From positions 1 through 64,000 of the forward strand of contig NIVC01003248.1 in assembly GCA_002269645.1 (NCBI GenBank): a DNA stretch of 64,000 nt, read 5' to 3'. A model generated the notes under the pieces. That model searched no databases. It was given only the letters and a program-made list of their open reading frames with translations, and was not told where the DNA came from. Below are positions 1 through 32,500 of this stretch, in pieces. Positions within the stretch are counted from its first letter, which is position 1. Each line of letters begins with the position of its first letter. The position numbers and the translations under genes were made by a program. The DNA is from Macrostomum lignano. Lineage: Eukaryota.

Positions 1-78
1 GCGGAGGACATCCTGCGCGGCAGTCTGGGCATTTTGAGAATTCCCGGCGACTACGGCTGCTGTTTTGAGGCCCGCTAG
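1..78 (+). CDS. 3' end of a cytochrome P450 paralog (AEDILRGSLGILRIPGDYGCCFEAR*), gene extends off the left edge
   Basis: Frame 1 translation closely matches the C-terminus of the P450 at 12374 (QEILRGTAGILRLPGDYRLLFEARD*); TAG at 76-78. Confidence 0.75.
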   Translation, partial: AEDILRGSLGILRIPGDYGCCFEAR

Positions 79-2838: not shown

Positions 2839-3580
2839 GGGCCTCGTATCTGTGCAATGCTAGCCGTCCCCAATGTACAGAGATGGACCTTCTATCTGTG
2901 CAGTGCTAGCCGTCCCCAATGTACAGAGATGGGCCTCCTATCTGTGCAGTGCTAGCCGTCCCCAATGTACAGAATGGACCTTCCTATCTGTGCAGTGCTA
3001 GCCGTCCCCAATGTACAGAGATGGACCTTCTATCTGTGCAGTGCTAGCCGTCCCCAATGTACAGAGATGGACCTTCTATCTGTGCAGTGCTAGCCGTCCC
3101 CAATGTACAGAGATGGACCTTCTATCTGTGCAGTGCTAGCCGTCCCCAATGTACAGAGATGGACCTTCTATCTGTGCAGTGCTAGCCGTCCCCAATGTAC
3201 AAGAAATGGACCTTCTATCTGTGCAGTGCTAGCCGTCCCCAATGTACAGAGATGGACCTTCTATCTGTGCAGTGCTAGCCGTCCCCAATGTACAGAGATG
3301 GACCTTCTGTCTGTGCAGTGCTAGCCGTCCCCAATGTACAGAGATGGACCTTCTATCTGTGCAGTGCTAGCCGTCCCCAATGTACAGAGATGGACCTTCT
3401 ATCTGTGCAGTGCTAGCCGTCCCCAATGTACAGAGATGGACCTTCTATCTGTGCAGTGCTAGCCGTCCCCAATGTACAGAGATGGACCTTCTATCTGTGC
3501 AGTGCTAGCCGTCCCCAATGTACAGAGATGGACCTCCTATCTCTGCAATGCCAACCGTCCCCAATGTACAGAGATGGGTC
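2839..3580. repeat. 46-bp minisatellite, about 16 copies
   Basis: Unit tctatctgtgcagtgctagccgtccccaatgtacagagatggacct; gccgtcccca recurs at 3001 and 3047. Confidence 0.95.
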
Positions 3581-5172: not shown

Positions 5173-8100
5173 TCAGGTGTCCTGGACCTCCCTTGAGCTT
5201 TTCGGCGGCGTCCCCGGAGGGCTGCGGTCGTCCCTGGCACTCTGGGAGCTTCTAGGATTGGTGCCCAGTGGGCTGCTGTCTGGAAAAGATTCGCTGATGT
5301 GCCCGCTGTCCTCCGCCGGGACGAGAATCGCCACGCGGTTAGCAGCGTCGCCGCGTCGGCTGCCTGACCGACCTGGGGTTGCGTTTGGGTGGAGCTTCTG
5401 TTGTGGGTTTTATGAGTTGCAAAAAGACTCAAACTCTCTGAAACTGAGACTCAGACTGAAGATTGAGGCCCCATACCGGAAGCCAGACCCATACCGGAAG
5501 CCAGGCCCAAACCGGAAGCCAGGCCTATACCGGAAGCCAGGCCCATACCGGAAGCCAGGCCTATACCGGAAGCTAGCCCCATACCGGAAGCCAGCCCCAT
5601 ACCGGAAGCCAGTCCCATACCGGAAGCCAGCCCCATACCGGAAGCCAGGCCCATACCGGAAGCCAGGCCCATACCGGAAGCCAGCCCCATACCGGAAGCC
5701 AGTCCCATACCGGAAGCCAGCCCCATACCGGAAGCCAGTCTCATACCGGAAGCCAGCCCCATACCAGCCCCTGACAAACGCACTCTGTATATCCTGAGCG
5801 GTGCCACTTGCAGCTTCAGCTTGCGCAGCAGATGTCACTGGCTGACTTTCATTATCCTGGGCCGAATCGCGTCCGCTGTCGGCCAATCTCGGGTCAAGAA
5901 TTGCAGCTTCCCGGTTCTGAGGGTGCTGATTAACTGGAAATTCAGAAAACACCATGCCGTGGCGACGGTCACTCTCAGTTCCGTTCTGTACATCGCTTGG
6001 TTGATGCGTCTGAAACAGTATTTTGTGTTCGATTCCTGCTTCTGACTCTCGCACTGAAGTATCTTGGGGGTTCGATTCCTGCATCTGACTCTCGCACTGA
6101 AATATCTTGGGGGTTCGATTCCTGCATCTGACTCTCGCACTGAAATATCTTGGGGTTCGATTCCTGCATCTGACTCTCGCACTGAAATATCTTGGGGGTT
6201 CGATTCCTGCATCTGACTCTCGCACTGAAGTACCCAGTGGGACAACTAAGTGGGGCGTACAGTGGGCGGTGTGCGCCCTCGCGACCGCCTGTGAGGGCAG
6301 TCAGTAAATATTTTTATTTTCACTTTAAAATGAAGTATGATCTGATTTTTCAATGAGAAATTGTGATTTTGTAATCGTAATACTTTAATTCGCCTTAATA
6401 AGTACGATCTTCGATCTTTGAAGCATTTCCAACGCCCATAGTCAATCAGCTAACGAATTGACTGCTGCAAATATCGGCTCGGCTCAGCAGAGTCCATATA
6501 GACGCTCTCACCACTGCCTCCTCGTCGCTTTGCTCATCTGACATGTTGACAAGGGGCAGGTGGAAATGATGGCGTCTTGCTTGGCAGTTCAGCGTCTCGG
6601 TTGTATGGAATTACTTAGCGGCTAAAACTGATTAGCTTTTCTGTAAAAGGCTTAGAATTCAAACTGATTTTAAACTTGGAACTAGGTATATAGACCACTA
6701 AGTATATTCTAAGATATATACTCGAAAAAAGAAATTTTTTGCTTGTCAGTGGTAATTTTAGGCTGGGTAGAGAGAGGGGTGCAAGCTACCAATCGCAGTC
6801 CTTTGCTACCGGACGTACGAGGGGCAAAGTGCAGCTGCATATCTATTTTTTACATGTACGAGCGATGCACACTCGCTGGAAAATAACGTACGCCTTGTGA
6901 CTGTGCAGACTTGCGCAGGCTGCCCAACGTCTCTCGCCATTTATGAAATACAGGGTTTTATCTTTTACAAGGTATGACAGAAAGGACTAAGCAAACTAAA
7001 TTGCCAAACCCTCGAAACCAAGACAGCTTCAGCAACTCAAGAATCCTTTTAACTCTTCTTAAACTCCCACTGGAGACTCTGCGTTATTGGTGTCGACACC
7101 CTGGCAACCAGCCTATAAGAGACTCTGGGGCCGCGTCACGAGGTGATAAAAAATTATTTCGAACTGAGAAACGCATTGAAAATTTGAGTATTTAAACAAA
7201 TTTTACATTAACTTTTTTTACATGCAACTTCCTCAACTCCGCGAAGATAACAGACTCCACTGGAGGACTCCATTCGATAACAATTTTGCGCGTGTTGCAG
7301 AAAATCAAGCAAAGTTCTCGTAGGCTATTCATTTAAGAGCACAGCACAAAATTCACGATAAATAAATAATAAATCAAGTGAGTCGCGTGCCCTGGACTGA
7401 ATTGCACCGCAAAAAGTATATTCGAATAATTTTGGTAAAGTAATTGCCGTGGCTTACTTTAGAGCAATAAGGACGTGATGGTCCAAAATCAATGGAGATT
7501 AGATAAGACCATCGTTTCTCTGAATAAAAGTCGCCTTAAACTCGAATAATTATCTAATGTAGAGATTAATAAGCCTCTCCGTTACCCAGTCCAACCAGCG
7601 AGTCCCTCAGTCCTCAACCTCCAGCGAGTTCCTCAGTCCTCAGCCTCCAGCGAGTCCCTCAGTCCTCAGTCCTCAACCTCCAGCGAGTCCCTCAGTCCTC
7701 AGTCCTCAACCTCCAGCGAGTCCCTCAGTCCTCAGTCCTCAACCTCCAGCGAGTCCCTCAGTCCTCAGCCTCCAGCGAGTCCCTCAGTCCTCAGCCTCCA
7801 GCGAGTCCCTCAGTCCTCAGCCTCCAGCGAGTCCCTCAGTCCTCAGCCTCCAGCGAGTCCCTCAGTCCACAGCCTCCAGCGAGTCCCTCAGTCCTCAGCC
7901 TCCAGCGAGTCCCTCAGTCCTCAGCCTCCAGCGAGTCCCTCAGTCCTCAGCCTCCAGCGAGTCCTCAGTCCTCAGCCTCCAGCGAGTCCCTCAGTCCCTC
8001 AGTCCTCAGCCTCCAGCGAGTCCCTCAGTCCTCAACTTCCAGCGAGTCCTTCAGTCCTCAGTCCTCAGCCTCCAGCGAGTCCCTCAGTCCTCAGCCTCCA

Positions 8101-9633
8101 GCGAGTCCCTCAGTCCTCAGCCTCCAGCGAGTCCCTCAGTCCTCAGCCTCCAGCGAGTCCCTCAGTCATCAACCCTCAGTCCTCAACCTCCAGCGAGTCC
8201 TTCAGTCCTCAACCTCCAGCGAGTCCCTCAGTCCTCAGTCCTCAACCTCCAGCGAGTCCTTCAGTCCTCAACCTCCAGCGAGTCCTTCAGTCCTCAACCT
8301 CCAGCGAGTCCTTCAGTCCTCAACCTCCAGCGAGTCCCTCAGTCCTCAGCCTCCAGCGAGTCCCTCAGTCCTCAGCCTCCAGCGAGTCCCTCAGTCCTCA
8401 GCCTCCAGCGAGTCCCTCAGTCCTCAGCCTCCAGCGAGTCCCTCAGTCCTCAGCCTCCAGCGAGTCCTCAGTCCTCAGCCTCCAGCGAGTCCCTCAGTCC
8501 CTCAGTCCTCAGCCTCCAGCGAGTCCCTCAGTCCTCAACTTCCAGCGAGTCCTTCAGTCCTCAGTCCTCAGCCTCCAGCGAGTCCCTCAGTCCTCAGCCT
8601 CCAGCGAGTCCCTCAGTCCTCAGCCTCCAGCGAGTCCCTCAGTCCTCAGCCTCCAGCGAGTCCCTCAGTCCTCAGCCTCCAGCGAGTCCCTCAGTCCTCA
8701 GCCTCCAGCGAGTCCCTCAGTCCTCAGCCTCCAGCGAGTCCCTCAGTCCTCAGCCTCCAGCGAGTCCCTCAGTCCTCAGCCTCCAGCGAGTCCCTCAGTC
8801 ATCAACCCTCAGTCCTCAACCTCCAGCGAGTCCTTCAGTCCTCAACCTCCAGCGAGTCCCTCAGTCCTCAGTCCTCAACCTCCAGCGAGTCCTTCAGTCC
8901 TCAACCTCCAGCGAGTCCTTCAGTCCTCAACCTCCAGCGAGTCCTTCAGTCCTCAACCTCCAGCGAGTCCTTTAGTCCTCAACCTCCAGCGAGTCCTTCA
9001 GTCCTCAACCTCCAGCGAATCCCTCAGTCCGATCCGCGGTGACGTGCCGCCGGCCGGGCTGTCCCGAGCGCTGCGGGGCGACCTCGGCTGGACGCCGGCC
9101 AAGTCTGGATGGGGCTCGGCCGCTTCTTCTAGCAGCTCGACCCCGCTGTCAGCGGAAGAGCGGTCCTGCGCTGCGTCGGAAACAATTCCGTATCGTCTTT
9201 CATCGGCACTTCCGGTCTGGGGCGATTGAACTCCTGGGGCGAGCTGCAAGTTCGGAGCACTGATTAGTTCAGACGGAATTCCATTGCAGACAGAGAATGG
9301 TGGCCAGGCAAATAAGTAGGGGCTTGCAGAATAGCTTACAACCCCAAGCTTTGAGCCAAAAAAGTAGAGACTCAGTGCGTACGAACATTCGTACGAGCGT
9401 GCATAAAATTCACAGAAAAATAAGAACAGACAAACAAGCCCCAGTGGAAAGACAGGAAATACTACAGTATAAAAAGAACTGCGAACTCCCACGCCTGATG
9501 GCGAGCCTGATGTACACAGAGTGGGCATTCGCAATGTTAATATTGTAACGCAGAGTTTTTGCTCAGGACTCACAGGCAACTGCAGTCGGCGTGCGACAGC
9601 ACTCGGTCCTGACTGGGGGTTCTCCTCTGACAT
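5173..9633 (-). CDS. Putative 4-exon orphan gene, about 231 aa, Ser/Pro/Arg/Asp-rich (exons 9633-9574, 9243-9010, 6009-5808, 5372-5173)
   Basis: GC-rich open segments with phase-consistent GT/AG sites (perfect GTGAGT donor at 9573; weaker donors at 9009 and 5807). Exons 2 and 4 share GxxPRSxxSARD and DSG motifs. No recognisable domain. Confidence 0.35.
5468..5770. repeat. 18-bp minisatellite (cccataccggaagccagg), about 16 copies
   Basis: Direct reading; produces the PYRKPG/GFRYGA pseudo-ORFs. Confidence 0.95.
6028..6231 (+). repeat. 42-43-bp tandem repeat, about 5 copies, each carrying a Pol III B-box-like motif (GGTTCGATTCC; first copy TGTTCGATTCC)
   Basis: ttcgattcct recurs at 6071, 6114, 6156 and 6199; followed by a possible SINE body at 6232-6305. 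Confidence 0.85.
7586..9030. repeat. About 26-bp minisatellite (agcgagtccctcagtcctcagcctcc), about 55 copies, with a higher-order block of about 500 bp
   Basis: Direct reading; the rare variant ctcaacttcc recurs at 8031 and 8534. Confidence 0.95.
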
Positions 9634-10446
9634 GCTCAAAAGCACAGCTTTGAGAATGCTTTTGCCTGCAAAATATGGTGTAAAATATGACATTAAAAAG
9701 ACAAATAATTGAATAGGCACTAACTGAAGCGATTGGAGGTGCGAGTAAATCATGCTGGAAATCATGCTGAGTGCAAGCCTCAAGAATCTGTGTGTAAATT
9801 TGGACTGATATAATGAATGTTCACAACAGCCTGATGCAACGACTTTGGCTTCATCGGGTCTCAACTACGAGCCGTAGCGGTAGTGGTATGGCAATTCTTC
9901 CCATTCCGCTGACTTTACCTGAAACTTTACCTGTACGAACTGAAGTCTGCCGAACAATTAACTGAACTGACACATGTGCCGCTTTAATATTAAAGGCAAC
10001 GCAGATGTAGCACAGTGCAAGAGTTTATATGCCTAGTATTTTAACAGGTGCGTACAGTAAGTAGTACACTGTTCGTGTCATGCACTCGCATGTCGCACGC
10101 CCATTGGCTGTGTGCTTCGAATTCAGCGTCAACATCCTTAATTAAGAGTAAGCTAACAGTGATGCGGTAGATATCTGGGGGCGTGATGAATCATTCTATT
10201 TTTGGCGATAACATTGGCGGTAAACACTGCTACGAGGTGCACACGAAGTGAGTTCTAAAGCGTTCGAATTTCTCTGGATTTAGAAGTCAGGCAGTTACAA
10301 CAGTCGGCTCCTTTGCTCAGCACTTGCTCAGGACTCTGTAAAGCCGATGGAGCAAACCAACTTTAGCCACACTAATTGCAGTAGAAATCAACTGATGCTC
10401 AAATCGTCGAAACTCATGCATCATTATCGAGGTAATAATCATTAAT

Positions 10447-10690
10447 TGGAGATCCCATTTATCCAGGTACAAATCTCTAATTAGGTATCCCATCATCCAG
10501 GTAGAAATCTCTAATTAAATATCCCATCATCCAGATAAAAATCTCTAATTAAATATCCCATCATCCAGATAAAAATCTCTAATTAAATATCCCATCATCC
10601 AGGTACAAATCTCTAATTAGGTATCCCAACATCCAGGTAAAAGTCTCTAATTAGAGATCCCCTTCATCCGGGTAAAAATCCGAACTATCG
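10447..10690. repeat. 34-bp minisatellite, about 7 copies (duplicated at 16424-16667)
   Basis: atctctaatt recurs at 10507 and 10541. Confidence 0.85.
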
Positions 10691-11569
10691 ATCCCATTGT
10701 GAAGTTTGCATGCGAGGCTGTGCCTTTATGCTTGTGTTTGTTATTTTATTCCTTCTATTTGGTCACGTGCTCTTTGTACATGGCTCTGTACATTTTAACC
10801 TCTGCCCCTCAGGGGTGATTCGTTTTTACTCTATTCATTATTCTATCGCTGACAATTTATAAAGTGAATGCTTTCGATAAAAAATGCCAAATATACTTCC
10901 TTTACTTTGCCCTACATTCTCAGCCCTTACACCATTTATCCACAAATAGCTACATGTAGTTAGAGATTCCATTTATCCGGGGCACAGTGAAGATTTCGTC
11001 ACTCAGGTGATCATATTTTTACGAGTATATTTTCAAATAATCGATAAAATTATTGGTGATCAGATAGTTGAATGAGTGAGCGCAGTTACTGCGAAACCAG
11101 AACTGAAACTACCAGAGGAAGCTGGAAAGATTTCCTCGAGCTGAATTCACGTCGAAAAAGTTGCCGAAAGGTCGAAACATGGAGAAAAGTCTCAGTGGAT
11201 TTCCTTTAAAAAATAAAAATAGGCACAGTCGGGTAGAAATTCAAGTCCTCATTTTGCGGGATCTAAAACGAGTAGATATGACTGAATAAATGTGAGTAGA
11301 TAACTATGAAGGTCATGTTTAACACACCTTTAAATAGAATACAGTAAGTAGTTAACCGAGCATTCAAAAGTTGCAACTTATCAAAAATTTGGAGTGCTTT
11401 CATGTTAATTTGGCCACTGATGCGCGGCTTTGAGCCCCTCAATACTACTGCAAGTATTTTATAAAGCTCGTATACCGATAGCTTAAAAAGTTCGGATAGC
11501 TTTACTTCAAACAAAAATTCAACGAAACCTAATTATCCAGACCAAGAAACGTTTACCGGTACATTATTT

Positions 11570-12376
11570 CCGCCTGCACCCGCCTCACCTGCATCAGCTC
11601 CACCTGCATCAGTTCCACCTGCACCAGCCCCACCTGCATCAGCTCCAGCTGCATCAGTTCCACCTGCACTAGCTACACCTGCATCAGCTCCACCTGCATC
11701 AGTTCCACCTGCACCAGCCCCACCTGCATCAGCTCCAGCTGCATCAGTTCCACCTGCACTAGCTACACCTGCATCAGCTCCACCTGCATCAGTTCCACCT
11801 GCACCAGCCCCACCTGCATCAGCTCCAGCTGCATCAGTTCCACCTGCACTAGCTACACCTGCATCAGCTCCACCTGCATCAGTTCCACCTGCACCAGCCC
11901 CACCTGCATCAGCTCCAGCTGCATCAGTTCCACCTGCACTAGCTACACCTGCATCAGCTCCACCTGCATCAGTTCCACCTGCACCAGCCCCACCTGCATC
12001 AGCTCCAGCTGCATCAGTTCCACCTGCACCAGCTCCACCTGCACTAGCTCCACCTGCACCAGCTCCACCTGCACCAGCTCCACCTGCACCAGCCCCACCT
12101 GCATCAGCTCCAGCTGCATCAGTTCCACCTGCACCAGCTCCACCTGCACTAGCTCCACCTGCACCAGCTCCACCTGCACCAGCTCCACCTGCACCAGCTC
12201 CAGCTGCATCAGTGCTACCTACACCAGCTCCAGCTGCATCAGTGCTACCTGCACCAGCTCCACCTGCATTAGTTCCACCTGCACCAGCTCCACCTGCACC
12301 AGCTCCACCTGCACCAGCTCCACCTGCACCAGCTCCACCTGCACCAGCTCCACCTGCACCAGCTCCACCTGCATCA
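11570..12376. repeat. 15-bp VNTR (ccacctgcaccagct) starting at the stop codon of CYP copy 1
   Basis: Direct reading; reads as GAGAG on the minus strand and PAPAP on the plus strand. Confidence 0.95.
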
Positions 12377-14323
12377 GTCGCGAGCTTCAAACAGCAGCCG
12401 GTAGTCACCCGGCAGTCTCAAAATGCCGGCCGTGCCCCGCAGAATTTCCTGCCGCCGCTCGGCGAACCCGGCCGCCAGGCGGACGCGGAACCGCTGCAGC
12501 ACGGCTGCGAACACCAGATACACCTGCATTCGAGCCAGCGACCTGCCTGCGCACGCCCGGAGACCCAGGGAGAACGGAACGTTCTTGCTGGCTCTGGCCC
12601 GGTCGAAGTTGCCCTCGGCCGTGAGGAATCGCTCCGGCAGGAACTCGTCGGGCCGGGGCCAAACGCCAGCGTCTCGCGACATTCCGTAGACGAACGGGAA
12701 GATCAGCGCGTCGCTAGGGATTCGGTAGCCCCGGAAGACGGTGCCGTCACCCACGGCCCGGTGGAACATCCCGAGAGGACTGAGCGACACCAGCCGGTAA
12801 ACTTCTTCGATGACCGCGCAGGTGACGGGTAGCCGGTCTTTGTCCCGCATCAGAGGTCGCCGCTCGCGTCCGACAATTTTGTCCAGCTCTGCGTGCACTT
12901 TGGCCTGCCAGGCCGGCTCGAAGGCGGCGTAGAGCATCAGCCACTCCAGGCTGCGCGCGGTGGTGTCCGTGCCGGCGAAGAACAGATCCATCACCACCGA
13001 AATGATCTGACAATCAGCATTGCGTCATCACAGATGAAAGATGATCCTAATCGCAGATGTATGCTCTAAGCGCCCCACATCCAGCAATTCTGCCAATTCC
13101 GCTGACTCCTGAGCACATGCATGTACAAGCGCGCCAGTACTGTACGCAGGCACGGTCTCATACACAGCCTCAATCTGCCAATTCCGCTGACTCCTGAGCA
13201 CATGCATGTACAAGCGCGCCAGTACTGTACGCAGGCACGGTCTCATCCACACCCTCAAGCAGGGTGTACAGCGGTCCTGCCGTGACTTTCTAATCGTCAG
13301 GCATGTACACTTTCTGTGCCTTGGAGATTGGCTGTCATGTGTGTGAATCGTATGGACGTATCGGCCCAGATACCCAGGTACATGCATATTTACCTGCTGA
13401 TCCTTGAATGTTTCGAAGTCCCCGCGAGCCTCCGCCCGGCTCCTTTCCTGGATGTAGACGTCGCACAGGCACTCGGGCTGGAAGGCCTCCACGTCGGCTC
13501 CCATCAGCTCCCTGCGCTGTCGAATCTGACCCCGGATGAACTCCTGGTTGGCCGCGACCAGCCGGGTGAAGTCGCTGGTGTCCGGGATGAGCCGCACCAG
13601 CCAGTCCAGCTGGGGGAACAGAAACGACAGGCCCTGCAGCGGACGCGTGGCGAACAGGCCGCTGGCTGCCGAGCGAATGAAGTCCAGATCCGGGTCGCCA
13701 CGCTTGAACTGTCGGCCGAGCGTCAGCGTGGCGATCACAGCGTTGCTGGCTTCGGAGAAAGTGTCCAGCACCTTCACTGGGCTGCCGGACTCGCTGGCCT
13801 CACGCAGGTCCGCCAGAATGTCATCCGTCTGGCTGTCGATCAACTTAGCCGAACCGTCTCTAGCGAAGCCGAAGTCCCTTAGTGTCCTCAGCGCGAGTCG
13901 CCGATGCATCTTCCACAGCGGACCTTCGCTGAACAGCAGGCCGCAGCCGCCGCTCTGCCGCTGGAAGATGGCAGCCTGGCACCTGCCCGTGTAGTTCTCA
14001 TCCTGGAGCATCTCGTCCGCCATCGCCAAGTCGTTGACAATGACGAACCGCTGGGCGCCCAGCCTGTAGGAGATGAGCGGGCCGTACTGGTCGCACAGCC
14101 GGGCAATGGACTCGTGCATCCGGGTCGGGTCCATGCTCGGCAGTGACCCCAGCACCGGCCAGCCCCGGGGTCCTGGCGGCAGCGGCGGCTCGCTTTTCTT
14201 CCGCCTGCGGACGGCCCTGAGAAGCAGCGCCACCGCTGCCGCTCCCGATGCAACGCCAGTCAGAAGGAGCAGCGGTCGGTTCTGGGCGCAGCCGAGGAGC
14301 CAGTCGCCCGCCTTCAGCAGCAT
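12374..14323 (-). CDS. Cytochrome P450, CYP2-clan-like, 520 aa, 2 exons (14323-13394, 13006-12374), copy 1
   Basis: N-terminal anchor, then PPGPRGWPVLG; I-helix AGTDTT; ExxR (EEVYR); PERF; heme motif FSLGLRACAG. Phase-0 GT-AG intron of 387 nt. Confidence 0.95.
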
Positions 14324-15265
14324 TTGCCTGTTCTGTGTTCCTGAGGCCCCCGACTTCAAGTTGAAACTTTAAGAAAAGTGTTTCCACTTGGCCCATAATC
14401 GCATGATGTGGTTGGCGAAACGATGATGCAGAGTGCCTAAATAGTAGTTTTATACTCGTAGTACCGTGTTTAAAAGAATCGTACTCAGACCGAACTGTTC
14501 TCAAGCCTTTCCAGAGTTCCTTGCCTGTGAGAAAGTTCAGTTTTTTTTCTGTACATTCGCTTAGATTATACAGCTGCCTGAGAGGCTTTCTTGGGTTCTC
14601 GTTCGTCTCTTGCGGACACAGCTTCAAATACACAGCTCACGCTCCAAGTACTTTTAATTGTGAAGCAAATTACTTTCGAATTCCAAGAAAACAGAAACAC
14701 CTGTTTTGAGCTCAACTGTCTCTTTCAAATAATTTCTTTATTGCCTGTAGTTTTTTGACACGTACACCCAGGCACACAAACTCTGCCTCGGTCTGTGCGT
14801 TCTCTTTTGTTCTTGTCAATCACCTGGCCGGTTCAGCGGAGCGCTCGCATAGCAGAGTTTGCGCGAGAGTACATGCTGATGGGGCTGCGTCTGTGTTTCA
14901 TGCAGCTTTCAGCTCAATTTCAAAAAAAGCATGCCAATTCGGGTTTTAAGTTGGAGATTTCTGAGCGCGCTGACAAACTTGGAGAAAGTTTAATTGTTCA
15001 AGAAAAGAATGCTATTTCTGTTAGCTGTCAGATCTATTTCCTGAGTGAGTCACCAATGATTCACGGCTCAATGCCAGGTGGGTTGGGCTATTCAATTGGT
15101 TTGATTTTATTGGCTGTAATTGCAGCTTACACAGGGAGCAGTTGGCAGGCATCGTTGGCTAAGCTATCGATTTCATATTGACAGACCATAAAAGGCGACT
15201 TCAGTCTCGAGTAAACAAGAGACTTGGACCGAGCTCACTGTTCCGGTTGTTCTCAGCGCATCGAA
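14324..15265. promoter_or_regulatory. Probable bidirectional promoter region between divergent CYP and DEG/ENaC genes (duplicated at 20526-21468)
   Basis: Start codons face away from each other 942 bp apart; no specific element identified. Confidence 0.4.
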
Positions 15266-15790
15266 ATGGCGTCTTGGCAGCAGCAGCAGCAGCAGCAGTC
15301 GAAAGCCGAGCTGGGAAAGCTCCGACGCAATGCACTGGTCTCCTTTGCTGAGAACACCTCAGCCCACGGAATCATGCACCTGACCCGGGGCTCAGGGGTC
15401 AGCCGCTTCATCTGGGTGGTGGTGATCGTGGGCGCCTGCGCCGGCTTTGCTCTGCACCTCAATGAGCTGGCCCAGCGGTACCTGAGCTACCCGGTGAGCA
15501 CTGAGTTCTCCAGCGAGGGCGCCGACTTTCAGTTTCCGACTGTGACCATTTGCCCGACCTACTTCATCACTTACAACACACCTGCAATTGAAAGCAATTA
15601 TTCAGTACCGGGTGGGTGCGATGCCTTGCCAGTGTGAGCAGATGCTTTTGCATATCCTTACACATTTTAACTGCATGAAATCTCGCTTCTCTATGTAGGT
15701 CATTCCAGGAACCTGAACCAGATGATCTTCGACATCGCGCTGCTGTTCTATCGCGCTGCTATTATATCAGTTCTATCAGGACTGATATAA
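15266..15790 (+). pseudogene. Truncated DEG/ENaC copy: exon 1 (15266-15611) plus partial exon 2 (15699-15752) reading into the junction; 145 aa if spliced
   Basis: Identical to the 5' part of the gene at 21469 up to ...CTGTTCTATC; frame continues RAAIISVLSGLI to TAA at 15788-15790. Confidence 0.9.
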
Positions 15791-15791
15791 T
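15753..15791. other. Duplication junction with 26 nt of templated insertion and an 11-bp hairpin
   Basis: gcgctgct is a copy of 15737-15744; attatatcagt is the reverse complement of actgatataat (start of the duplicated unit); gttctatcag matches 21948-21957. Confidence 0.9.
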
Positions 15792-17546
15792 GAATGTTCA
15801 CAACAGCCTGATGCAACGACTTTGGCTTCATCGGGTCTCAACTACGAGCCGTAGCGGTAGTGGTATGGCAATTCTTCCCATTCCGCTGACTTTACCTGAA
15901 ACTTTACCTGTACGAACTGAAGTCTGCCGAACAATTAACTGAACTGACACATGTGCCGCTTTAATATTAAAGGCAACGCAGATGTAGCACAGTGCAAGAG
16001 TTTATATGCCTAGTATTTTAACAGGTGCGTACAGTAAGTAGTACACTGTTCGTGTCATGCACTCGCATGTCGCACGCCCATTGGCTGTGTGCTTCGAATT
16101 CAGCGTCAACATCCTTAATTAAGAGTAAGCTAACAGTGATGCGGTAGATATCTGGGGGCGTGATGAATCATTCTATTTTTGGCGATAACATTGGCGGTAA
16201 ACACTGCTACGAGGTGCACACGAAGTGAGTTCTAAAGCGTTCGAATTTCTCTGGATTTAGAAGTCAGGCAGTTACAACAGTCGGCTCCTTTGCTCAGCAC
16301 TTGCTCAGGACTCTGTAAAGCCGATGGAGCAAACCAACTTTAGCCACACTAATTGCAGTAGAAATCAACTGATGCTCAAATCGTCGAAACTCATGCATCA
16401 TTATCGAGGTAATAATCATTAATTGGAGATCCCATTTATCCAGGTACAAATCTCTAATTAGGTATCCCATCATCCAGGTAGAAATCTCTAATTAAATATC
16501 CCATCATCCAGATAAAAATCTCTAATTAAATATCCCATCATCCAGATAAAAATCTCTAATTAAATATCCCATCATCCAGGTACAAATCTCTAATTAGGTA
16601 TCCCAACATCCAGGTAAAAGTCTCTAATTAGAGATCCCCTTCATCCGGGTAAAAATCCGAACTATCGATCCCATTGTGAAGTTTGCATGCGAGGCTGTGC
16701 CTTTATGCTTGTGTTTGTTATTTTATTCCTTCTATTTGGTCACGTGCTCTTTGTACATGGCTCTGTACATTTTAACCTCTGCCCCTCAGGGGTGATTCGT
16801 TTTTACTCTATTCATTATTCTATCGCTGACAATTTATAAAGTGAATGCTTTCGATAAAAAATGCCAAATATACTTCCTTTACTTTGCCCTACATTCTCAG
16901 CCCTTACACCATTTATCCACAAATAGCTACATGTAGTTAGAGATTCCATTTATCCGGGGCACAGTGAAGATTTCGTCACTCAGGTGATCATATTTTTACG
17001 AGTATATTTTCAAATAATCGATAAAATTATTGGTGATCAGATAGTTGAATGAGTGAGCGCAGTTACTGCGAAACCAGAACTGAAACTACCAGAGGAAGCT
17101 GGAAAGATTTCCTCGAGCTGAATTCACGTCGAAAAAGTTGCCGAAAGGTCGAAACATGGAGAAAAGTCTCAGTGGATTTCCTTTAAAAAATAAAAATAGG
17201 CACAGTCGGGTAGAAATTCAAGTCCTCATTTTGCGGGATCTAAAACGAGTAGATATGACTGAATAAATGTGAGTAGATAACTATGAAGGTCATGTTTAAC
17301 ACACCTTTAAATAGAATACAGTAAGTAGTTAACCGAGCATTCAAAAGTTGCAACTTATCAAAAATTTGGAGTGCTTTCATGTTAATTTGGCCACTGATGC
17401 GCGGCTTTGAGCCCCTCAATACTACTGCAAGTATTTTATAAAGCTCGTATACCGATAGCTTAAAAAGTTCGGATAGCTTTACTTCAAACAAAAATTCAAC
17501 GAAACCTAATTATCCAGACCAAGAAACGTTTACCGGTACATTATTT

Positions 17547-18578
17547 CCGCCTGCACCCGCCTCACCTGCATCAGCTCCACCTGCATCAGTTCCACCTGCA
17601 CCAGCCCCACCTGCATCAGCTCCAGCTGCATCAGTTCCACCTGCACTAGCTACACCTGCATCAGCTCCACCTGCATCAGTTCCACCTGCACCAGCCCCAC
17701 CTGCATCAGCTCCAGCTGCATCAGTTCCACCTGCACTAGCTACACCTGCATCAGCTCCACCTGCATCAGTTCCACCTGCACCAGCCCCACCTGCATCAGC
17801 TCCAGCTGCATCAGTTCCACCTGCACTAGCTACACCTGCATCAGCTCCACCTGCATCAGTTCCACCTGCACCAGCCCCACCTGCATCAGCTCCAGCTGCA
17901 TCAGTTCCACCTGCACTAGCTACACCTGCATCAGCTCCACCTGCATCAGTTCCACCTGCACCAGCCCCACCTGCATCAGCTCCAGCTGCATCAGTTCCAC
18001 CTGCACCAGCTCCACCTGCACTAGCTCCACCTGCACCAGCTCCACCTGCACCAGCTCCACCTGCACCAGCCCCACCTGCATCAGCTCCAGCTGCATCAGT
18101 TCCACCTGCACCAGCTCCAGCTGCATCAGTTCCACCTGCACTAGCTACACCTGCATCAGCTCCACCTGCATCAGTTCCACCTGCACCAGCCCCACCTGCA
18201 TCAGCTCCAGCTGCATCAGTTCCACCTGCACCAGCTCCACCTGCACTAGCTCCACCTGCACCAGCTCCACCTGCACCAGCTCCACCTGCACCAGCCCCAC
18301 CTGCATCAGCTCCAGCTGCATCAGTTCCACCTGCACCAGCTCCACCTGCACTAGCTCCACCTGCACCAGCTCCACCTGCACCAGCTCCACCTGCACCAGC
18401 TCCAGCTGCATCAGTGCTACCTACACCAGCTCCAGCTGCATCAGTGCTACCTGCACCAGCTCCACCTGCATTAGTTCCACCTGCACCAGCTCCACCTGCA
18501 CCAGCTCCACCTGCACCAGCTCCACCTGCACCAGCTCCACCTGCACCAGCTCCACCTGCACCAGCTCCACCTGCATCA
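17547..18578. repeat. 15-bp VNTR after CYP copy 2, 225 bp (15 units) longer than in copy 1
   Basis: Overlapping ORF is 366 aa vs 291 aa; offset changes from 5977 to 6202. Confidence 0.95.
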
Positions 18579-20525
18579 GTCGCGAGCTTCAAACAGCAGC
18601 CGGTAGTCACCCGGCAGTCTCAAAATGCCGGCCGTGCCCCGCAGAATTTCCTGCCGCCGCTCGGCGAACCCGGCCGCCAGGCGGACGCGGAACCGCTGCA
18701 GCACGGCTGCGAACACCAGATACACCTGCATTCGAGCCAGCGACCTGCCTGCGCACGCCCGGAGACCCAGGGAGAACGGAACGTTCTTGCTGGCTCTGGC
18801 CCGGTCGAAGTTGCCCTCGGCCGTGAGGAATCGCTCCGGCAGGAACTCGTCGGGCCGGGGCCAAACGCCAGCGTCTCGCGACATTCCGTAGACGAACGGG
18901 AAGATCAGCGCGTCGCTAGGGATTCGGTAGCCCCGGAAGACGGTGCCGTCACCCACGGCCCGGTGGAACATCCCGAGAGGACTGAGCGACACCAGCCGGT
19001 AAACTTCTTCGATGACCGCGCAGGTGACGGGTAGCCGGTCTTTGTCCCGCATCAGAGGTCGCCGCTCGCGTCCGACAATTTTGTCCAGCTCTGCGTGCAC
19101 TTTGGCCTGCCAGGCCGGCTCGAAGGCGGCGTAGAGCATCAGCCACTCCAGGCTGCGCGCGGTGGTGTCCGTGCCGGCGAAGAACAGATCCATCACCACC
19201 GAAATGATCTGACAATCAGCATTGCGTCATCACAGATGAAAGATGATCCTAATCGCAGATGTATGCTCTAAGCGCCCCACATCCAGCAATTCTGCCAATT
19301 CCGCTGACTCCTGAGCACATGCATGTACAAGCGCGCCAGTACTGTACGCAGGCACGGTCTCATACACAGCCTCAATCTGCCAATTCCGCTGACTCCTGAG
19401 CACATGCATGTACAAGCGCGCCAGTACTGTACGCAGGCACGGTCTCATCCACACCCTCAAGCAGGGTGTACAGCGGTCCTGCCGTGACTTTCTAATCGTC
19501 AGGCATGTACACTTTCTGTGCCTTGGAGATTGGCTGTCATGTGTGTGAATCGTATGGACGTATCGGCCCAGATACCCAGGTACATGCATATTTACCTGCT
19601 GATCCTTGAATGTTTCGAAGTCCCCGCGAGCCTCCGCCCGGCTCCTTTCCTGGATGTAGACGTCGCACAGGCACTCGGGCTGGAAGGCCTCCACGTCGGC
19701 TCCCATCAGCTCCCTGCGCTGTCGAATCTGACCCCGGATGAACTCCTGGTTGGCCGCGACCAGCCGGGTGAAGTCGCTGGTGTCCGGGATGAGCCGCACC
19801 AGCCAGTCCAGCTGGGGGAACAGAAACGACAGGCCCTGCAGCGGACGCGTGGCGAACAGGCCGCTGGCTGCCGAGCGAATGAAGTCCAGATCCGGGTCGC
19901 CACGCTTGAACTGTCGGCCGAGCGTCAGCGTGGCGATCACAGCGTTGCTGGCTTCGGAGAAAGTGTCCAGCACCTTCACTGGGCTGCCGGACTCGCTGGC
20001 CTCACGCAGGTCCGCCAGAATGTCATCCGTCTGGCTGTCGATCAACTTAGCCGAACCGTCTCTAGCGAAGCCGAAGTCCCTTAGTGTCCTCAGCGCGAGT
20101 CGCCGATGCATCTTCCACAGCGGACCTTCGCTGAACAGCAGGCCGCAGCCGCCGCTCTGCCGCTGGAAGATGGCAGCCTGGCACCTGCCCGTGTAGTTCT
20201 CATCCTGGAGCATCTCGTCCGCCATCGCCAAGTCGTTGACAATGACGAACCGCTGGGCGCCCAGCCTGTAGGAGATGAGCGGGCCGTACTGGTCGCACAG
20301 CCGGGCAATGGACTCGTGCATCCGGGTCGGGTCCATGCTCGGCAGTGACCCCAGCACCGGCCAGCCCCGGGGTCCTGGCGGCAGCGGCGGCTCGCTTTTC
20401 TTCCGCCTGCGGACGGCCCTGAGAAGCAGCGCCACCGCTGCCGCTCCCGATGCAACGCCAGTCAGAAGGAGCAGCGGTCGGTTCTGGGCGCAGCCGAGGA
20501 GCCAGTCGCCCGCCTTCAGCAGCAT
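18576..20525 (-). CDS. Cytochrome P450, CYP2-clan-like, 520 aa, copy 2 (exons 20525-19596, 19208-18576)
   Basis: ORF-track translations identical to copy 1; all P450 motifs intact. Confidence 0.95.
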
Positions 20526-21468
20526 TTGCCTGTTCTGTGTTCCTGAGGCCCCCGACTTCAAGTTGAAACTTTAAGAAAAGTGTTTCCACTTGGCCCCATA
20601 ATCGCATGATGTGGTTGGCGAAACGATGATGCAGAGTGCCTAAATAGTAGTTTTATACTCGTAGTACCGTGTTTAAAAGAATCGTACTCAGACCGAACTG
20701 TTCTCAAGCCTTTCCAGAGTTCCTTGCCTGTGAGAAAGTTCAGTTTTTTTTCTGTACATTCGCTTAGATTATACAGCTGCCTGAGAGGCTTTCTTGGGTT
20801 CTCGTTCGTCTCTTGCGGACACAGCTTCAAATACACAGCTCACGCTCCAAGTACTTTTAATTGTGAAGCAAATTACTTTCGAATTCCAAGAAAACAGAAA
20901 CACCTGTTTTGAGCTCAACTGTCTCTTTCAAATAATTTCTTTATTGCCTGTAGTTTTTTGACACGTACACCCAGGCACACAAACTCTGCCTCGGTCTGTG
21001 CGTTCTCTTTTGTTCTTGTCAATCACCTGGCCGGTTCAGCGGAGCGCTCGCATAGCAGAGTTTGCGCGAGAGTACATGCTGATGGGGCTGCGTCTGTGTT
21101 TCATGCAGCTTTCAGCTCAATTTCAAAAAAAGCATGCCAATTCGGGTTTTAAGTTGGAGATTTCTGAGCGCGCTGACAAACTTGGAGAAAGTTTAATTGT
21201 TCAAGAAAAGAATGCTATTTCTGTTAGCTGTCAGATCTATTTCCTGAGTGAGTCACCAATGATTCACGGCTCAATGCCAGGTGGGTTGGGCTATTCAATT
21301 GGTTTGATTTTATTGGCTGTAATTGCAGCTTACACAGGGAGCAGTTGGCAGGCATCGTTGGCTAAGCTATCGATTTCATATTGACAGACCATAAAAGGCG
21401 ACTTCAGTCTCGAGTAAACAAGAGACTTGGACCGAGCTCACTGTTCCGGTTGTTCTCAGCGCATCGAA

Positions 21469-24028
21469 ATGGCGTCTTGGCAGCAGCAGCAGCAGCAGCA
21501 GTCGAAAGCCGAGCTGGGAAAGCTCCGACGCAATGCACTGGTCTCCTTTGCTGAGAACACCTCAGCCCACGGAATCATGCACCTGACCCGGGGCTCAGGG
21601 GTCAGCCGCTTCATCTGGGTGGTGGTGATCGTGGGCGCCTGCGCCGGCTTTGCTCTGCACCTCAATGAGCTGGCCCAGCGGTACCTGAGCTACCCGGTGA
21701 GCACTGAGTTCTCCAGCGAGGGCGCCGACTTTCAGTTTCCGACTGTGACCATTTGCCCGACCTACTTCATCACTTACAACACACCTGCAATTGAAAGCAA
21801 TTATTCAGTACCGGGTGGGTGCGATGCCTTGCCAGTGTGAGCAGATGCTTTTGCATATCCTTACACATTTTAACTGCATGAAATCTCGCTTCTCTATGTA
21901 GGTCATTCCAGGAACCTGAACCAGATGATCTTCGACATCGCGCTGCTGTTCTATCAGCTGAAGCTGGACAACTGGAACGTCTCCATGCCGCCGGAGGACT
22001 TTGACTCGTATTATGACGGAAAGCTGGGGCTGCGGTCCCTCGCATATCGAGGAGTTCTGTTCCAGCTGCCGCATGAGACGGTCATCTACTGCCGGTACAA
22101 CTCGGAGCCCTGCTCCTATGAGAACTTCACCGTCTACAAGGATGAGGACAGGTGAGACAGAGTCAAACTTCATGTTAGAGAAATTTTAAAACTCTTCATA
22201 CGAAAGTTAAATTAAACTTCAGGTTCATGTGCCTGTCCTTTAATCCACTGAACCGGACGATCACGCAAGCTGGCGAGGGCAGCGGGCTGTACTTAGTGCT
22301 GTACAACTACGGCTTCTCGTTCCTCACCAATGCGGAGCTGGTGGACAATGTCCCCGGCTTCCGCGTGGCGCTGCACGAAAAAGGTAAGGCACTGTGCGAT
22401 CCTAGCGTTGAGGGTTAGGGTGGTCGCGAGCTCGGGTGCCTTGGACGTCTGCATTTAATGACATTCTCCACTGGCAAATGCGGTCAATACGGTCGTTCTA
22501 TGCACAAGAGCTGAACTGAACCCGCCAGCCCCCGCACAAAATGCAGGCTTCAAGCCCGACATGGTCTCAAGCTTCAACGCTCTGTTCGGCTACAAGACCT
22601 CGGCCCAGGTGACCGTGCAAAGCGAAACGAAGGTCAATCGAGCGGCTGCGGCGTGCACTGAAGACCTTCCGAACGTCACCTACACGGGGAACTTTTCGAT
22701 GCCTGGAAACTACGAGAACCAGAGCTTCTATGGAACAACTGAGGACTGCGTCATCAGAATCATGCAGGAGGAGTACCGCAACACCTGTAGCTGCTTAGGA
22801 ACTCACCTGCCGCTGCCTACGGACCTTATGAACGACACTGAAGTGTGTCACATGCTGCCTGAGGAGGTGGGGCCATTTTACTCTGGTACAAAATAGTTAG
22901 CAAAGCAGAAGAAATAAAATAAGCAAGGCAGTCAAGACTAACTTTGTTGCACTTCATTTCCAATGCAGGTGTTTTTCTTCGACATAAGGCATCGAAAAAA
23001 CGCTTTAAACATGACGGAGTACATCATCACAAATCGGAGCTGGGTGTACAACACACTGACCGAGTACCTGCAGCAGAACTGGGACGTGTACAACCGCACT
23101 GCGCAGCGGGTCAAATGCTTCCACCGAGTGCTGCAGCGCCAGAAGACGCATGGCGTGTGGGCCAAGCAGTGCCCGGTCCGCTGCAGCAACACCCGCTACA
23201 GCGTCACCACCGGGGTGTCCACCTGGCCCCGTGACACAACACTGGCGGTGGTCGCCGTGAGGGACTACGCCGCCGAACTGCTCAAGAAACTCGCTCGCAC
23301 CAACCTCTCCAGCTCGCGGCCGCAGATTCTGCACGACTACACTTCTTACATGATTGACAAAAAGTTCATCAGCGTGCTGGATCTGTACCCCAAGACCACC
23401 AAGATCAGCGTCTTCACCGAGTCGTTTGGATATCCTCTGAGGAATTTTTTCTCGGACTTAGGTGGCATTCTCGGTGAGTCCTAGCAGTTACCTAACTGTA
23501 ATCGCACCAAAACCTTTTTGGCCAGGGAGGTTGACGGCAACAAGTTGACTGCCGACGAATTGGGAGCAATAGTGAGGCCTAACGGCGAGCCTACGAGAAT
23601 AGAGCCAGAGGGAATCTTCTTAGTGTAAAATATTGGCTAGTGACTTTCCGTTAGCAACTGCTCCAGGAGACTTGTACCCAGTTCTAGGCTGGACATTGAC
23701 TACGTAGCATGGGGATGTAGAGTCCAAGGTTGAGCAATATGACCGCGCTGTAACTTCAGGCCTCTGGGTTGGAGTCTCGATCATCACCCTGCTGGAGATG
23801 GTGGAGCTTCTTGTCCAAATTCTGGTCCTGTCCGCATCCAAGCTGCAGTCGGGCGGCGGGCAACAGGTGCAACCACTCCAGGGCTCGCACCTCCAGGACA
23901 CGGAGTCACGTGACATCTATTCCTCCAAATTGGACTTGGATTGCAAGAAATCAACGGATCTGGAATCGGTTCGGGCCATGGAACAGCCGCAGTGCATTGA
24001 GGCGCTTGGAAATGAGCAGCGAATATGA
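21469..24028 (+). CDS. DEG/ENaC (ASIC/FaNaC-like) sodium channel subunit, 616 aa, 6 exons (21469-21814, 21902-22151, 22223-22383, 22547-22866, 22969-23473, 23760-24028)
   Basis: Pre-TM1 TSAHG; TM1; FPTVTIC; Cys-rich ectodomain; GFRVALH; TM2 SDLGGILGLWVGVSIITLLE with GxS filter. All introns GT-AG and phase-consistent (total 1851 nt). Confidence 0.93.
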
Positions 24029-25139: not shown

Positions 25140-25630
25140 TTCTGGTGTGGCATGGCATACCACTGGTGTGGCATGATATACTACTGGTGTGGCATGATAT
25201 ACTACTGGTGTGGCATGATATACTACTGGTGTGGCATGATATACTACTGGTGTGGCATGATATCCTACTGGTGTGGCATGGCATACTACTGGTGTGGCAT
25301 GATATACTACTGGTGTGGCATGATATACTACTGGTGTGGCATGATATACTACTGGTGTGGCATGATATACTACTGGTGTGGCATGATATACTACTGGTGT
25401 GGCATGATATACTACTGGTGTGGCATGATATACTACTGGTGTGGCATGATATACTACTGGTGTGGCATGATATACTACTGGTGTGGCATGATATACTACT
25501 GGTGTGGCATGACATACTACTGGTGTGGCATGATATACTACTGGTGTGGCATGACATACTACTGGTGTGGCATGGCATACTACTGGTGTGGCATGACATA
25601 CTACTGGTGTGGCATGACATACTACTGGTA
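25140..25630. repeat. 21-bp minisatellite (ctggtgtggcatgatatacta), about 23 copies
   Basis: Direct reading. Confidence 0.96.
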
Positions 25631-29576: not shown

Positions 29577-32500
29577 ATGAGTGCTCGCAAAGATTTGAGT
29601 TACCCTGGGTTTCTCCCGACTTCCCGACCCCAGACTCTGGCCGGGCTTCTTGCCAGCCTCATCCTCATCGGCGTCGGCCGGCCCGATGTTTTGGCCGCGG
29701 ATCCTCGGCCTCGCGCCGCTGTCATCCTGCAGACGCCCGCCGGCTCTGTGGTGGCCGGCACCGAGGCCGTCCTGACCTGCCAGCTGGCGCAGACCGTCAG
29801 CGGAGCCGCCGACTCGCTGCGCCCTGCCGCCAGGCTGCGGTGGCGCCGAATCGACGGCGTCAAACTGGGCGCGGCCGGCAGGGTCCGGCAAGTCAACGGG
29901 ACGCTGCGGATGGCGCCAGTGCTGATGTCGGATGCTGCGGAGTACGAATGCGTGGCCTCTACGGAAAGTGAGTGAGCTCATGCGCTTTACTTGCTTGAGC
30001 CTTCCTTTGTGCTATTAATGCTGAGAAAACCCGCCCTGCCAACTCAAGCCGGTCAGCTGAAGTCGCCGCCAGCCCAGCTCACCGTGGTCCCAGCGGAGTC
30101 GGCAAAGTCTGCAGCCGGCCGGCCCGTCTTTGAAGTTCAACCGCGCGATCAGACGGTGCTGACTGGCGAGTCGGCGACCTTCCACTGCTCCGCCACGTTG
30201 GCTGCGAGCGGCTCCGGCGTCTGGCAGCGACGACGGCCCGCGCTCAACTGGCGTCGAGAGTCGCTTGATGGCAAGCCGCGACCGATGCCGCCTCCTGCAC
30301 GAATTCAGCTGCTGGACAACGGCTCGCTCACCCTGACTGGCGTGCTTGCCGCCGATGCCGGCAGGTGAGTTGTGGAGCTGCTGACTTTTCCAGAGTTTCT
30401 GTGCAGCACCTGACCAATCATGGGTCATGAATCTGTGCCGCACCTGACCAATCATCGGTCATGAATCTGTGCCGCACCTGACCAATCATCGGTCATGAAT
30501 CTGTGCCGCACCTGACCAATCATCGGTCATGAATCTGTGCCGCACCTGACCAATCATCGGTCATGAATCTGTACCGCTTCAATAGATTACTTCAGTTGAT
30601 TAACCAATGTCGCGCCGCAGGTACGTATGCGAGGCCGCCAGCGCGGTGGGTCCAGCTGCCGAGTCGGCGGCTTGCCTGACGGTGCTTCGGCGGCCGACTT
30701 TCACGGAAACGCCAGCTGACGTGACCGCGACCGTCGGCGACCGCATCGTGCTCGCTTGCCGCGCGGTGGGCAACCCACCGCCGACCGTCTACTGGTCCAA
30801 GGGCTTTGTCGACAAGCACCCGGACGATGACAGCGACGATGGCCTGCGCGTCGGGCCCGATGGTTCGCTGACGATATCGCCAGTGGAGCGCAGCCACGCC
30901 GGTCAGTTCCAGTGCCACGCCACCAACGCCGTCGGCTCAGCGCAGGCTGCCGCTCTGCTGCACGTTGTCGATTCTCCAGCCAGGTCGCCGTCTACTGCCG
31001 CCGTTCCGCTGTTCGCCGAGGGACCGCCGGAAGCGGCTTTTGTAGCTGAGGGCTCCCGGCTCCGGCTGCCCTGCCGTCTGGCCGAGCCTGTTGAAGGCAG
31101 CCGCGTCATCTGGCGGCGCGGGCGCTCCAGCAGCGACCAGCGCGAGCAGCTGCGGGCGGAGACGGATGGCAGCTGGCTGGTCGCCTCGGCTCGGCTTTCG
31201 GACTCCGGAAGCTACACCTGCGCGGCAGAAGTTCCCGGCTTCGGTGTCACGGAGTGGCCGGGCGCTGTCAACGTCACCGTCCTCGGCGGCGCAGCCCGGC
31301 TGCCAGCGCCGCCCATCAAGCGGTCGCCCCCAAAAGCGCCGAAATCCGTTGAAGTTTTGGACGCTGGGGGCGACTGGGCGCTGCTGCGAGTTGCGGACGC
31401 GTGCGGTCGCGTTTATCGGCTCGAGAGGCAGTGCACCGGACATCAGAGCTGGCGCCGGTACGCAGGTGAGAACAGGCGATTGCTGCTGCGGACACAGTCC
31501 GATGTACGCAAGAAATTTTACACCGAAAAAAAGATTTTCTGTTCTTTTGCTTCAGTCAGTAATTTAGAGCTTGGGAGAGCGACCCAATGGCGGCTGGGTC
31601 ACAAAACAGAGTCAAAGGGCGCCGTAGTTAGCAAGCAGGCAGCCGATGATTACGAGTTTGCACCTGGCACGAGTTTGCACGAGTTTGCTTTGGGTTCACG
31701 ATATTTGACTGCTCCAGTTAGACTGGCCAGCATTTGACTACCACAAACTGACTGACAACCGCAACTCTAACCCAACCCTAACCCTAGCCCTAACCCTAAC
31801 CATATCCCTTACCCTAACCCTAGCCCTAACCAGTGTCTGTATGAGTCTCTTGCTCTCAGTATTAAAGTTTATTCGCTCGATCCATTGAAACATTCGTCAG
31901 TTTCTGACGCTGAAAATTGAAATTGAGACAAATGTGTTACGAGTTACAATTATCGATCGCAACTGGAGTACATTACCGTCTCTCGTCGCTCGAACTCCCA
32001 CCGTCCAGGTCTGTTCGAGTCCCGCCTGCTGAAAGCTGACGGCCTGCCCGCCGAGTCCGAGTGCCGCTTCGTGGCTCGGGCCGTCACAGACTGCGGCGAA
32101 GCCCTCCTAGACTCCGCGGCTCAGCGGCCGCTGTCGGAGCCGTCGGGCGTATCAGCGCCGGTGCGCACCCCCCGGCTGAAACGGCGCCGGCACTGGCGAC
32201 GGCTGGAGCTGCGGGCTGGCGAGGGTCCCGGTGTGCCGGTGCGCGTTAGGGACCTGGCCGTCACGGTTGGTTCAGGGCGCAACCGGGTCGAGGGTTGGGA
32301 AATCTCGGGCTGATGGAAATGCAGCAGACGAACCAAAGCTTAGACAACTAAAACCGCCACTACTCATAGTATAAAGGTGAAATATATTTAACCTTTTGCC
32401 AGCCGCTTGACCGCTCGCTCTCCGTCGCCTCGTGGCGTCTCGAAGGCACCGCAGCGGCCCGCGCCCAAGTCATTGGATTCCGCGTCACCTACCGCCTGGA

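Follow-up and report, generated by a model that had tools for sequence, protein, structure and literature searches.

The genome assembly of the flatworm Macrostomum lignano (line DV1) contains a head-to-tail duplication of ~6 kb whose two copies are separated by 26 nt of new sequence. The whole of this insert can be assembled from three short copies of the DNA that flanks the two breakpoints. Considering the identity of the copies together with the structure of the seam, we regard the locus as probably (probability of about 0.6) a real and very young tandem duplication, the seam of which would have been closed by polymerase-theta-type end joining (TMEJ). Replicative template switching is the first of the alternatives weighed below, followed by an artefact of the assembly.

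Materials and Methods

The stretch of DNA analysed here, referred to as the window, comprises positions 1-64000 (64,000 nt) of contig NIVC01003248.1. It belongs to assembly Mlig_3_7 (GCA_002269645.1, WGS prefix NIVC) of the M. lignano inbred line DV1, which was built from ~130x PacBio coverage with Canu 1.4, polished using Pilon with Illumina reads from both DNA and RNA, and scaffolded with SSPACE; the assembly description mentions no amplification step. A whole-window repeat finder was swamped by a 15/45-nt minisatellite that hid the 6-kb repeat, and the copies were defined by self-BLAST. In the tiling test, the query had to be covered by exact matches of 8 nt or more, drawn from either strand of templates spanning ±50 nt of both breakpoints (100 nt each). 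For the age estimate, we assumed between 1e-9 and 1e-8 mutations per site and generation.

Results

The coordinates of the features discussed in the text are collected in Table 1.

Table 1. Features of the duplicated locus and of the remainder of the 64,000-nt window.
Feature	Position	Strand	Description
Intact right-hand breakpoint	9801/9802		AAATTT/GGACTG; left edge of copy 1
Copy 1	9802-15752		5,951 nt; self-BLAST and global MAFFT alignment
Copy 2	15779-21955		6,177 nt; self-BLAST and global MAFFT alignment
Intact left-hand breakpoint	21955/21956		GTTCTATC/AGCTGAAG; right edge of copy 2
Junction insert	15753-15778	+	GCGCTGCTATTATATCAGTTCTATCA; 26 nt, unique within the window (exact-word search, both strands)
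Piece 1	15753-15760	+	GCGCTGCT; direct copy of 15737-15744 (= 21940-21947)
Piece 2	15761-15771	+	ATTATATCAGT; inverted copy of ACTGATATAAT at 15781-15791 (= 9804-9814)
Piece 3	15770-15779	+	GTTCTATCAG; direct copy of the intact left breakpoint, 21948-21957
225-nt tandem in 45-nt minisatellite	17887-18336		copy 2; exact, 17887-18111 = 18112-18336; single 225-nt block in copy 1
C-run difference	14392-14394; 20594-20597		CCC in copy 1 vs CCCC in copy 2; ~70 nt upstream of the P450 ATG
CYP2-like cytochrome P450, copy A	12374-14323	-	exon 1 14323-13394, intron 13393-13007 (GTAAAT...CAG), exon 2 13006-12374
CYP2-like cytochrome P450, copy B	18576-20525	-	predicted protein identical to copy A
Truncated DEG/ENaC (ASC) 5' fragment	15266-15790	+	exon 1 15266-15611, 87-nt intron, exon 2 from 15699, broken at 15752
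Intact DEG/ENaC (ASC) gene	21469-24028 (end about)	+	starts in copy 2, extends past the duplication
Ig/I-set and fibronectin-III (fn3) protein	30607-33707	+	unusually long exons
Rhodopsin-family receptor fragment	37327-38214	-
Annotated 599-aa ORF	46351-48150	+	no convincing domain
DXD-motif glycosyltransferase	60873-61865	+
Example minisatellite arrays	1299-1859, 2847-3577, 7595-9030, 25142-25629, 35848-37239, 43228-44127, 51416-53274

The two direct copies adjoin and each breakpoint is present once in its intact context, as in a tandem duplication; an exact-word search found GGACTGATATAAT opening both copy 2 (15779) and copy 1 (9802). Global alignment of copies 1 and 2 revealed no substitution over 5,951 aligned nt. 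The value of 99% identity given by BLAST was discarded as an artefact of the minisatellite register. The copies differ in two places only, and both differences are of the slippage type, namely a 225-nt step in a minisatellite and one C in a C-run. The minisatellite array occupies 11568-12378 in copy 1, the 225-nt block corresponds to 5 x 45 nt, and the 225-nt gap between the copies is free to slide across an identical tract of 233 nt. These two differences could have arisen through instability after the duplication, through errors of the duplicating synthesis or as PacBio consensus errors that escaped polishing. We find it unlikely that both arose as errors while the second copy was being made by a long-tract synthesis resembling break-induced replication.

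The absence of substitutions (0/5,951) sets a 95% upper bound of ~5e-4 differences per site (3/5951). At the assumed mutation rates, this bound would correspond to an age below ~25,000-250,000 generations, unless the copies are homogenised by gene conversion. The description of the duplication as recent, made in an earlier note on this DNA, is thus supported, and it is quite possible that the duplication is a polymorphism or is confined to the laboratory line.

We then read the seam nucleotide by nucleotide. Sequence to the left of it ends in ...GTTCTATC at 15752, and the 26 nt that follow are tiled completely by exact pieces of 8, 11 and 10 nt, two of them direct and one inverted, whose templates lie at most 16 nt from the breakpoints and belong to both flanks. 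Piece 1 is entered through a 3-nt microhomology, since ATC precedes both the piece (15750-15752) and its template (15734-15736), in agreement with the slip back to the ATC at 15734 that had been proposed. A direct repeat (15734-15749 / 15750-15765) is present at this piece, and ATCGCGCTGCT was located in the window at 15734, 15750 and 21937 by exact-word search. Piece 2 had been interpreted as the reverse complement of the other breakpoint and, indeed, ATTATATCAGT has a single + strand occurrence in the window (15761) while its reverse complement, ACTGATATAAT, was found at 9804 and 15781. As for piece 3, attributed to the left breakpoint of the unbroken allele, GTTCTATCAG is present in the window at 15770 and 21948 only (exact-word search). 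It includes an AG (21956-21957) that lies beyond the final left breakpoint and that is missing after the breakpoint of copy 1. The copying of AG into piece 3 implies either that the left single strand originally extended 2 nt or more beyond its final end and was then trimmed back, or that it was never broken. Pieces 2 and 3 overlap by GT, and piece 3 overlaps with copy 2 by G.

The insert also creates a near-palindrome (15761-15791) with arms at 15761-15774 and 15778-15791 that pair at 13 of 14 positions (one T/G mismatch) around a 3-nt loop, ATC, and with a predicted fold of -8.4 kcal/mol (z = -3.55). The 11-bp hairpin reported before (15761-15771 with 15781-15791) is therefore present as part of an inverted repeat that extends to 14 nt with one mismatch. 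Altogether, direct reading and exact-word searches confirmed the 6-kb tandem duplication with its three-piece insert in every detail that could be checked.

To what extent such a tiling might occur by chance was assessed with two controls. None of the ~160,000 real 26-mers elsewhere in the window was fully tiled, and only 1 of 3,000,000 random 26-mers was (chance ~3e-7). Because full tiling is so rare among both real and random 26-mers, the templated origin of the insert is beyond doubt. The proposal of an iterative, microhomology-primed insertion stands in what concerns templating, which goes far beyond chance, with one reservation in what concerns priming: one of the four switches lacks perfect terminal microhomology. 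The other three have 3, 2 and 1 nt of microhomology, and at the imperfect one (AAT vs AAC) there are 3/5 interrupted matches.

An in-silico replay that starts from the unduplicated reference sequence reproduced 15740-15800 base for base in four priming steps. In this reconstruction, a single 3' end, that of the bottom strand at the right-hand breakpoint (...CAGTCC-3'), would be extended in short aborted rounds. Its terminal C would first prime through 1 nt (C:G) on the top strand of the left breakpoint and 9 nt (TGATAGAAC) would be copied, including the complement of AG; the left single strand serving as template would then still extend 2 nt or more beyond where the breakpoint finally came to lie. 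The end would next dissociate and snap back on itself through AC:GT (4/5 bases paired, 3-nt loop), and the copying of 9 nt (TGATATAAT) would create the palindrome. In the third step, the end would prime again on the left region, this time with AAT facing AAC and hence no perfect terminal homology, and 8 nt (AGCAGCGC) would be copied. Finally, GAT/ATC annealing to the left end, trimming of the 3' flap carrying AG and sealing of the joint would complete the seam. As for the upstream events, the model put forward for C. elegans would have one end of a single break invade the sister chromatid and over-extend by ~6 kb, the over-extended end being then joined to the other break end in place of re-annealing. 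Both the order of the steps and the choice of the strand belong to our reconstruction, and a mirror-image reading on the top strand explains the product equally well.

Regarding the gene content of the unit, it holds a complete two-exon P450 gene (ATG at 14323, stop at 12374, predicted product of 520 aa), a 45-nt minisatellite downstream of it, the shared upstream region, and a DEG/ENaC gene over its first 1.15 exons. Pfam PF00067 matches both P450 exons; residues 30-519 of the 520-aa model can be aligned with CYP2B/2A/2E structures in PDB (best E=8e-63), and the haem-binding motif FxxGxRxCxG is present as FSLGLRACAG. On the basis of its predicted protein, we assign the duplicated gene to the cytochromes P450 of clan 2. 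An 85-nt tandem of two units (97% matches) lies in the P450 intron of both copies (13089-13258 and 19291-19460), and it is therefore older than the 6-kb duplication. At the very start of the contig, 24 aa encoded at 4-75 (+ strand) matched the C-terminus of the duplicated P450 in tblastn (67% identity). Probably a further CYP paralogue ends here, the rest of it being cut off by the contig start, which would make this locus a small CYP cluster.

The right breakpoint is non-coding and lies 2.6 kb downstream from the stop of the P450 gene, and the left one falls 54 nt into the second coding exon of the ASC gene. The truncated ASC copy was assigned by Pfam (PF00858), translation and alignment with the paralogue; its reading frame runs through the insert as RAAIISVLSGLI up to a TAA at 15788-15790, giving 145 aa. 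The ORFs that span the junction are short (22 and 27 aa). The truncated fragment is predicted to bear a promoter and points at the 3' end of P450 copy B, which is encoded in the - strand (18576-20525). If transcription from the fragment were not terminated, it would give an RNA antisense to P450 copy B.

Protein searches with a P450 exon and the ASC protein returned distant matches or M. lignano paralogues at 44-60% identity, and no allelic or homeologous contig was found among them. Look-ups of the exact products of two ORFs near the duplication gave no match, that of the annotated 599-aa ORF matched the source contig only, and no independent assembly with or without the seam was found. Nor did the 32 nt to the left of the breakpoint match any of the metagenome contigs scanned, a result that is uninformative for an animal genome.

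The window as a whole is rich in minisatellites, with 25 Tandem Repeats Finder rows of periods between 10 and 85 nt and arrays of up to 1.9 kb, several of which yield long, spurious-looking ORFs. This density agrees with the 15% of simple/tandem repeats published by the authors of the assembly, who also described a substantial redundancy due to the extra large chromosomes in DV1. The genes of the window (Ig/I-set and fn3, rhodopsin-type receptor, DEG/ENaC channel, P450) are in keeping with an animal genome. A 12-nt tandem, AAATCATGCTG(G/A) x2, is present at 9747-9769, 33 nt to the left of the right-hand breakpoint, and is a further small footprint of slippage or repair near the break site. Further along, a GenBank gene of 1131 aa (49166-53457, - strand) begins with an ORF that carries a CAP-Gly domain (49317-49865) and is likely to continue through the ORF at 51181-53457, which consists of a 42-nt (14-aa) minisatellite; its product could thus contain a long repeat that evolves fast. 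A search of the window against Rfam gave no match.

Discussion

Tandem duplications with scars of this type are known from other animals and from plants. In C. elegans brc-1/brd-1 mutants, tandem duplications of 1 kb-1 Mb, mostly 10-20 kb, depend on polq-1 (Kamp 2020, PMC7368036), and the model favoured by the authors is that a break end extended on the sister chromatid is joined to the other end by TMEJ (PMC7368036). Tandem-duplication junctions of C. elegans tnsl-1 show microhomology and inserts of 1-20 bp, some of them templated by the flanks; these features are lost in polq-1 mutants, and the duplications of Arabidopsis tonsoku are alike (PMC13031629). The M. lignano duplication resembles those of both organisms in its head-to-tail arrangement, kilobase size, microhomology and short flank-templated insert (PMC7368036, PMC13031629). 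It differs from them in that its 6-kb unit stands at the small end of the range, in that its insert has 26 nt made of three pieces from both flanks and in both orientations where 1-20 bp are usual (PMC13031629), and in that the seam was found in a reference assembly and in the germ line of a presumably repair-proficient flatworm, not in a mutant accumulation line; Pol theta would take part in its formation.

The chemistry of the seam can also be compared with the deletions produced by TMEJ in C. elegans. There, templates lie within ~20 bp of the breakpoints and ~85% of the priming occurs within 10 bp, a single nucleotide is able to prime, complex inserts result from reiterated priming with reverse-complement snap-back as a minority, and one flank only served as template in 16/17 complex inserts (van Schendel 2016, PMC5068794). 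The same signature is found in natural indels of C. elegans isolates (van Schendel 2015, PMC4490562). The M. lignano seam shares with these events the nearby templates, the priming by one to a few nt at three of its four switches, the reiteration and the occasional snap-back (PMC5068794, PMC4490562). All of its insert can be matched exactly to sequence in the vicinity of the junction, and its direct pieces and snap-back piece are the product expected of repeated priming, extension and dissociation. Three aspects fit TMEJ less well: one switch lacks perfect microhomology, 26 nt is slightly long, and both flanks acted as templates, unlike in most of the complex inserts of C. elegans. Furthermore, the C. 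elegans scars accompany small deletions, whereas the one described here seals a duplication. A literature search retrieved no work linking Macrostomum, or in a relevant manner planarians, to Pol theta or polq, and it is from these likenesses that we infer Pol theta as the enzyme acting at the seam.

FoSTeS/MMBIR, the replicative mechanism invoked for human copy number variation, also produces duplication junctions through serial microhomology switches that copy nearby sequence in either orientation, although the segments are typically longer and come from further away, and no end joining is involved. Applied to this locus and without Pol theta, a strand nascent on the top strand would stall at 21955, slip back 16 nt (ATC), move to the opposite strand at the upstream site, return through GT and then jump through G to 9802, after which the unit would be replicated again. 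This route passes through the same four switches (3, 0, 2 and 1 nt of microhomology) and accounts for the sequence just as well, and the AG beyond the first stall point would be natural if the template had never been broken. Serial switching onto nearby templates in either orientation, which the seam does show, is common to FoSTeS/MMBIR and TMEJ and does not discriminate between them. Break-induced-replication-like synthesis has also been invoked for the tandem duplications of TONSL mutants (PMC13031629). Against this explanation, animals and plants that have been tested genetically lose the templated inserts of their tandem duplications when Pol theta is absent (PMC7368036, PMC13031629), and pieces of 8-11 nt taken at most 16 nt from the breakpoints are the pattern documented for Pol theta (PMC5068794). 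Thus, template switching without Pol theta seems to us unlikely, yet it deserves to be kept in mind. The earlier note had named both theta and template switching; both fit, and a seam of this size is too small for its sequence alone to tell one from the other.

Whether the duplication is biological, as had also been claimed, has to be considered separately from the mechanism. One could think of an animal with a single copy, the tandem and its seam having been generated by chimeric molecules or by mis-joined haplotypes. The copies are 100% identical except for homopolymer and minisatellite lengths, which are the types of sequence that a long-read consensus gets wrong; Mlig_3_7 has a known redundancy that stems from the extra chromosome copies of DV1, and since short reads from identical duplicates map to more than one place, the length differences may have gone uncorrected by Pilon. 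However, the joining of haplotypes would not create 26 nt of new, structured sequence, and the window contains no Ns. A ligation chimera would consist of the plain abutment of unrelated fragments and would be lost in a 130x consensus, a missed PacBio adapter gives an inverted product while the copies are direct here, and the contig was polished with Illumina reads. The seam shows neither the gap nor the plain overlap that characterise a false duplication, its 26-mer being unique in the window and known from the assembly alone. An artefact is consequently improbable, and a biological origin is likely, short of proof, given the ~130x Illumina-polished PacBio assembly made with Canu and the new sequence at the seam.

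Two other scenarios would end in the same product. In the first, the 6-kb segment would be excised or copied as an extrachromosomal circular DNA whose ends are joined by templated end joining, and the circle would then recombine into the homologous locus to give unit-seam-unit. The structure of the product would be identical, and a two-ended fragment would supply both 3' tails for the replay. This route is very improbable to us, as it requires two breaks plus recombination; no specific evidence of it was found, and the seam itself would have a TMEJ-like chemistry all the same. In the second, a simple duplication with the junction ...GTTCTATCAG/GACTG (1-nt microhomology) would have been followed by a break at the seam and a templated insertion of 25 nt, a possibility raised by the fact that piece 3 and copy 2 read as a clean junction with one nucleotide of homology. 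It would demand two rare events at the same nucleotide in a time too short for one substitution per 6 kb, and we find it every bit as improbable as the circle. Lastly, unequal homologous recombination between repeats (NAHR) and transposon- or retro-mediated duplication carry next to no probability: the window is full of tandem repeats, but the breakpoints share 1 nt (G) only, self-BLAST gave no match between the breakpoint regions, which have no repeats in common, neither terminal repeats or other mobile-element ends nor a target-site duplication or poly-A is present, and the P450 and ASC introns are kept in both copies, all of which excludes unequal exchange, transposition and retroposition.

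Returning to TMEJ as the preferred mechanism, the scar type itself has already been established by C. elegans and Arabidopsis genetics, and the present case is a new example that will not surprise specialists. Its interest lies in offering a clean natural case of the birth of a whole-gene duplicate in a species other than the usual model organisms, with a seam that records the steps of repair. In practical terms, it may seed a genome-wide survey of the seams of young M. lignano duplications, it is attractive for teaching, and the seam offers a possible marker, by outward-facing PCR, of a structural variant between DV1 and other lines.

As a consequence of the duplication, the genome would have gained a second, identical CYP2-like P450 of the detoxification type with its full upstream region, together with a truncated DEG/ENaC fragment. 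In Drosophila populations, young segregating tandem duplicates capture whole genes and create partial fragments, and they are reported in excess for insecticide-resistance genes among other classes (PMC4503668). The M. lignano duplication is like the Drosophila duplications of detoxification genes in being young, in having captured a whole gene and in having made a partial fragment; the Drosophila work consists of short-read population surveys in which junction chemistry was not the focus (PMC4503668).

The further claim that the seam records the pathway generating gene duplicates in this genome is a generalisation from a single case (n=1) that is silent on any genome-wide rule. If, against our expectation, the two slippage-type differences were errors of the synthesis that produced the second copy, the locus would preserve both phases of the process, a sloppy over-extension on the sister chromatid and then closure by Pol theta, in a repair-proficient animal. 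By extension of this unlikely reading, tandem duplications sealed by TMEJ might be a main source of the near-identical duplicated blocks that make up an unusually large fraction of the M. lignano genome.
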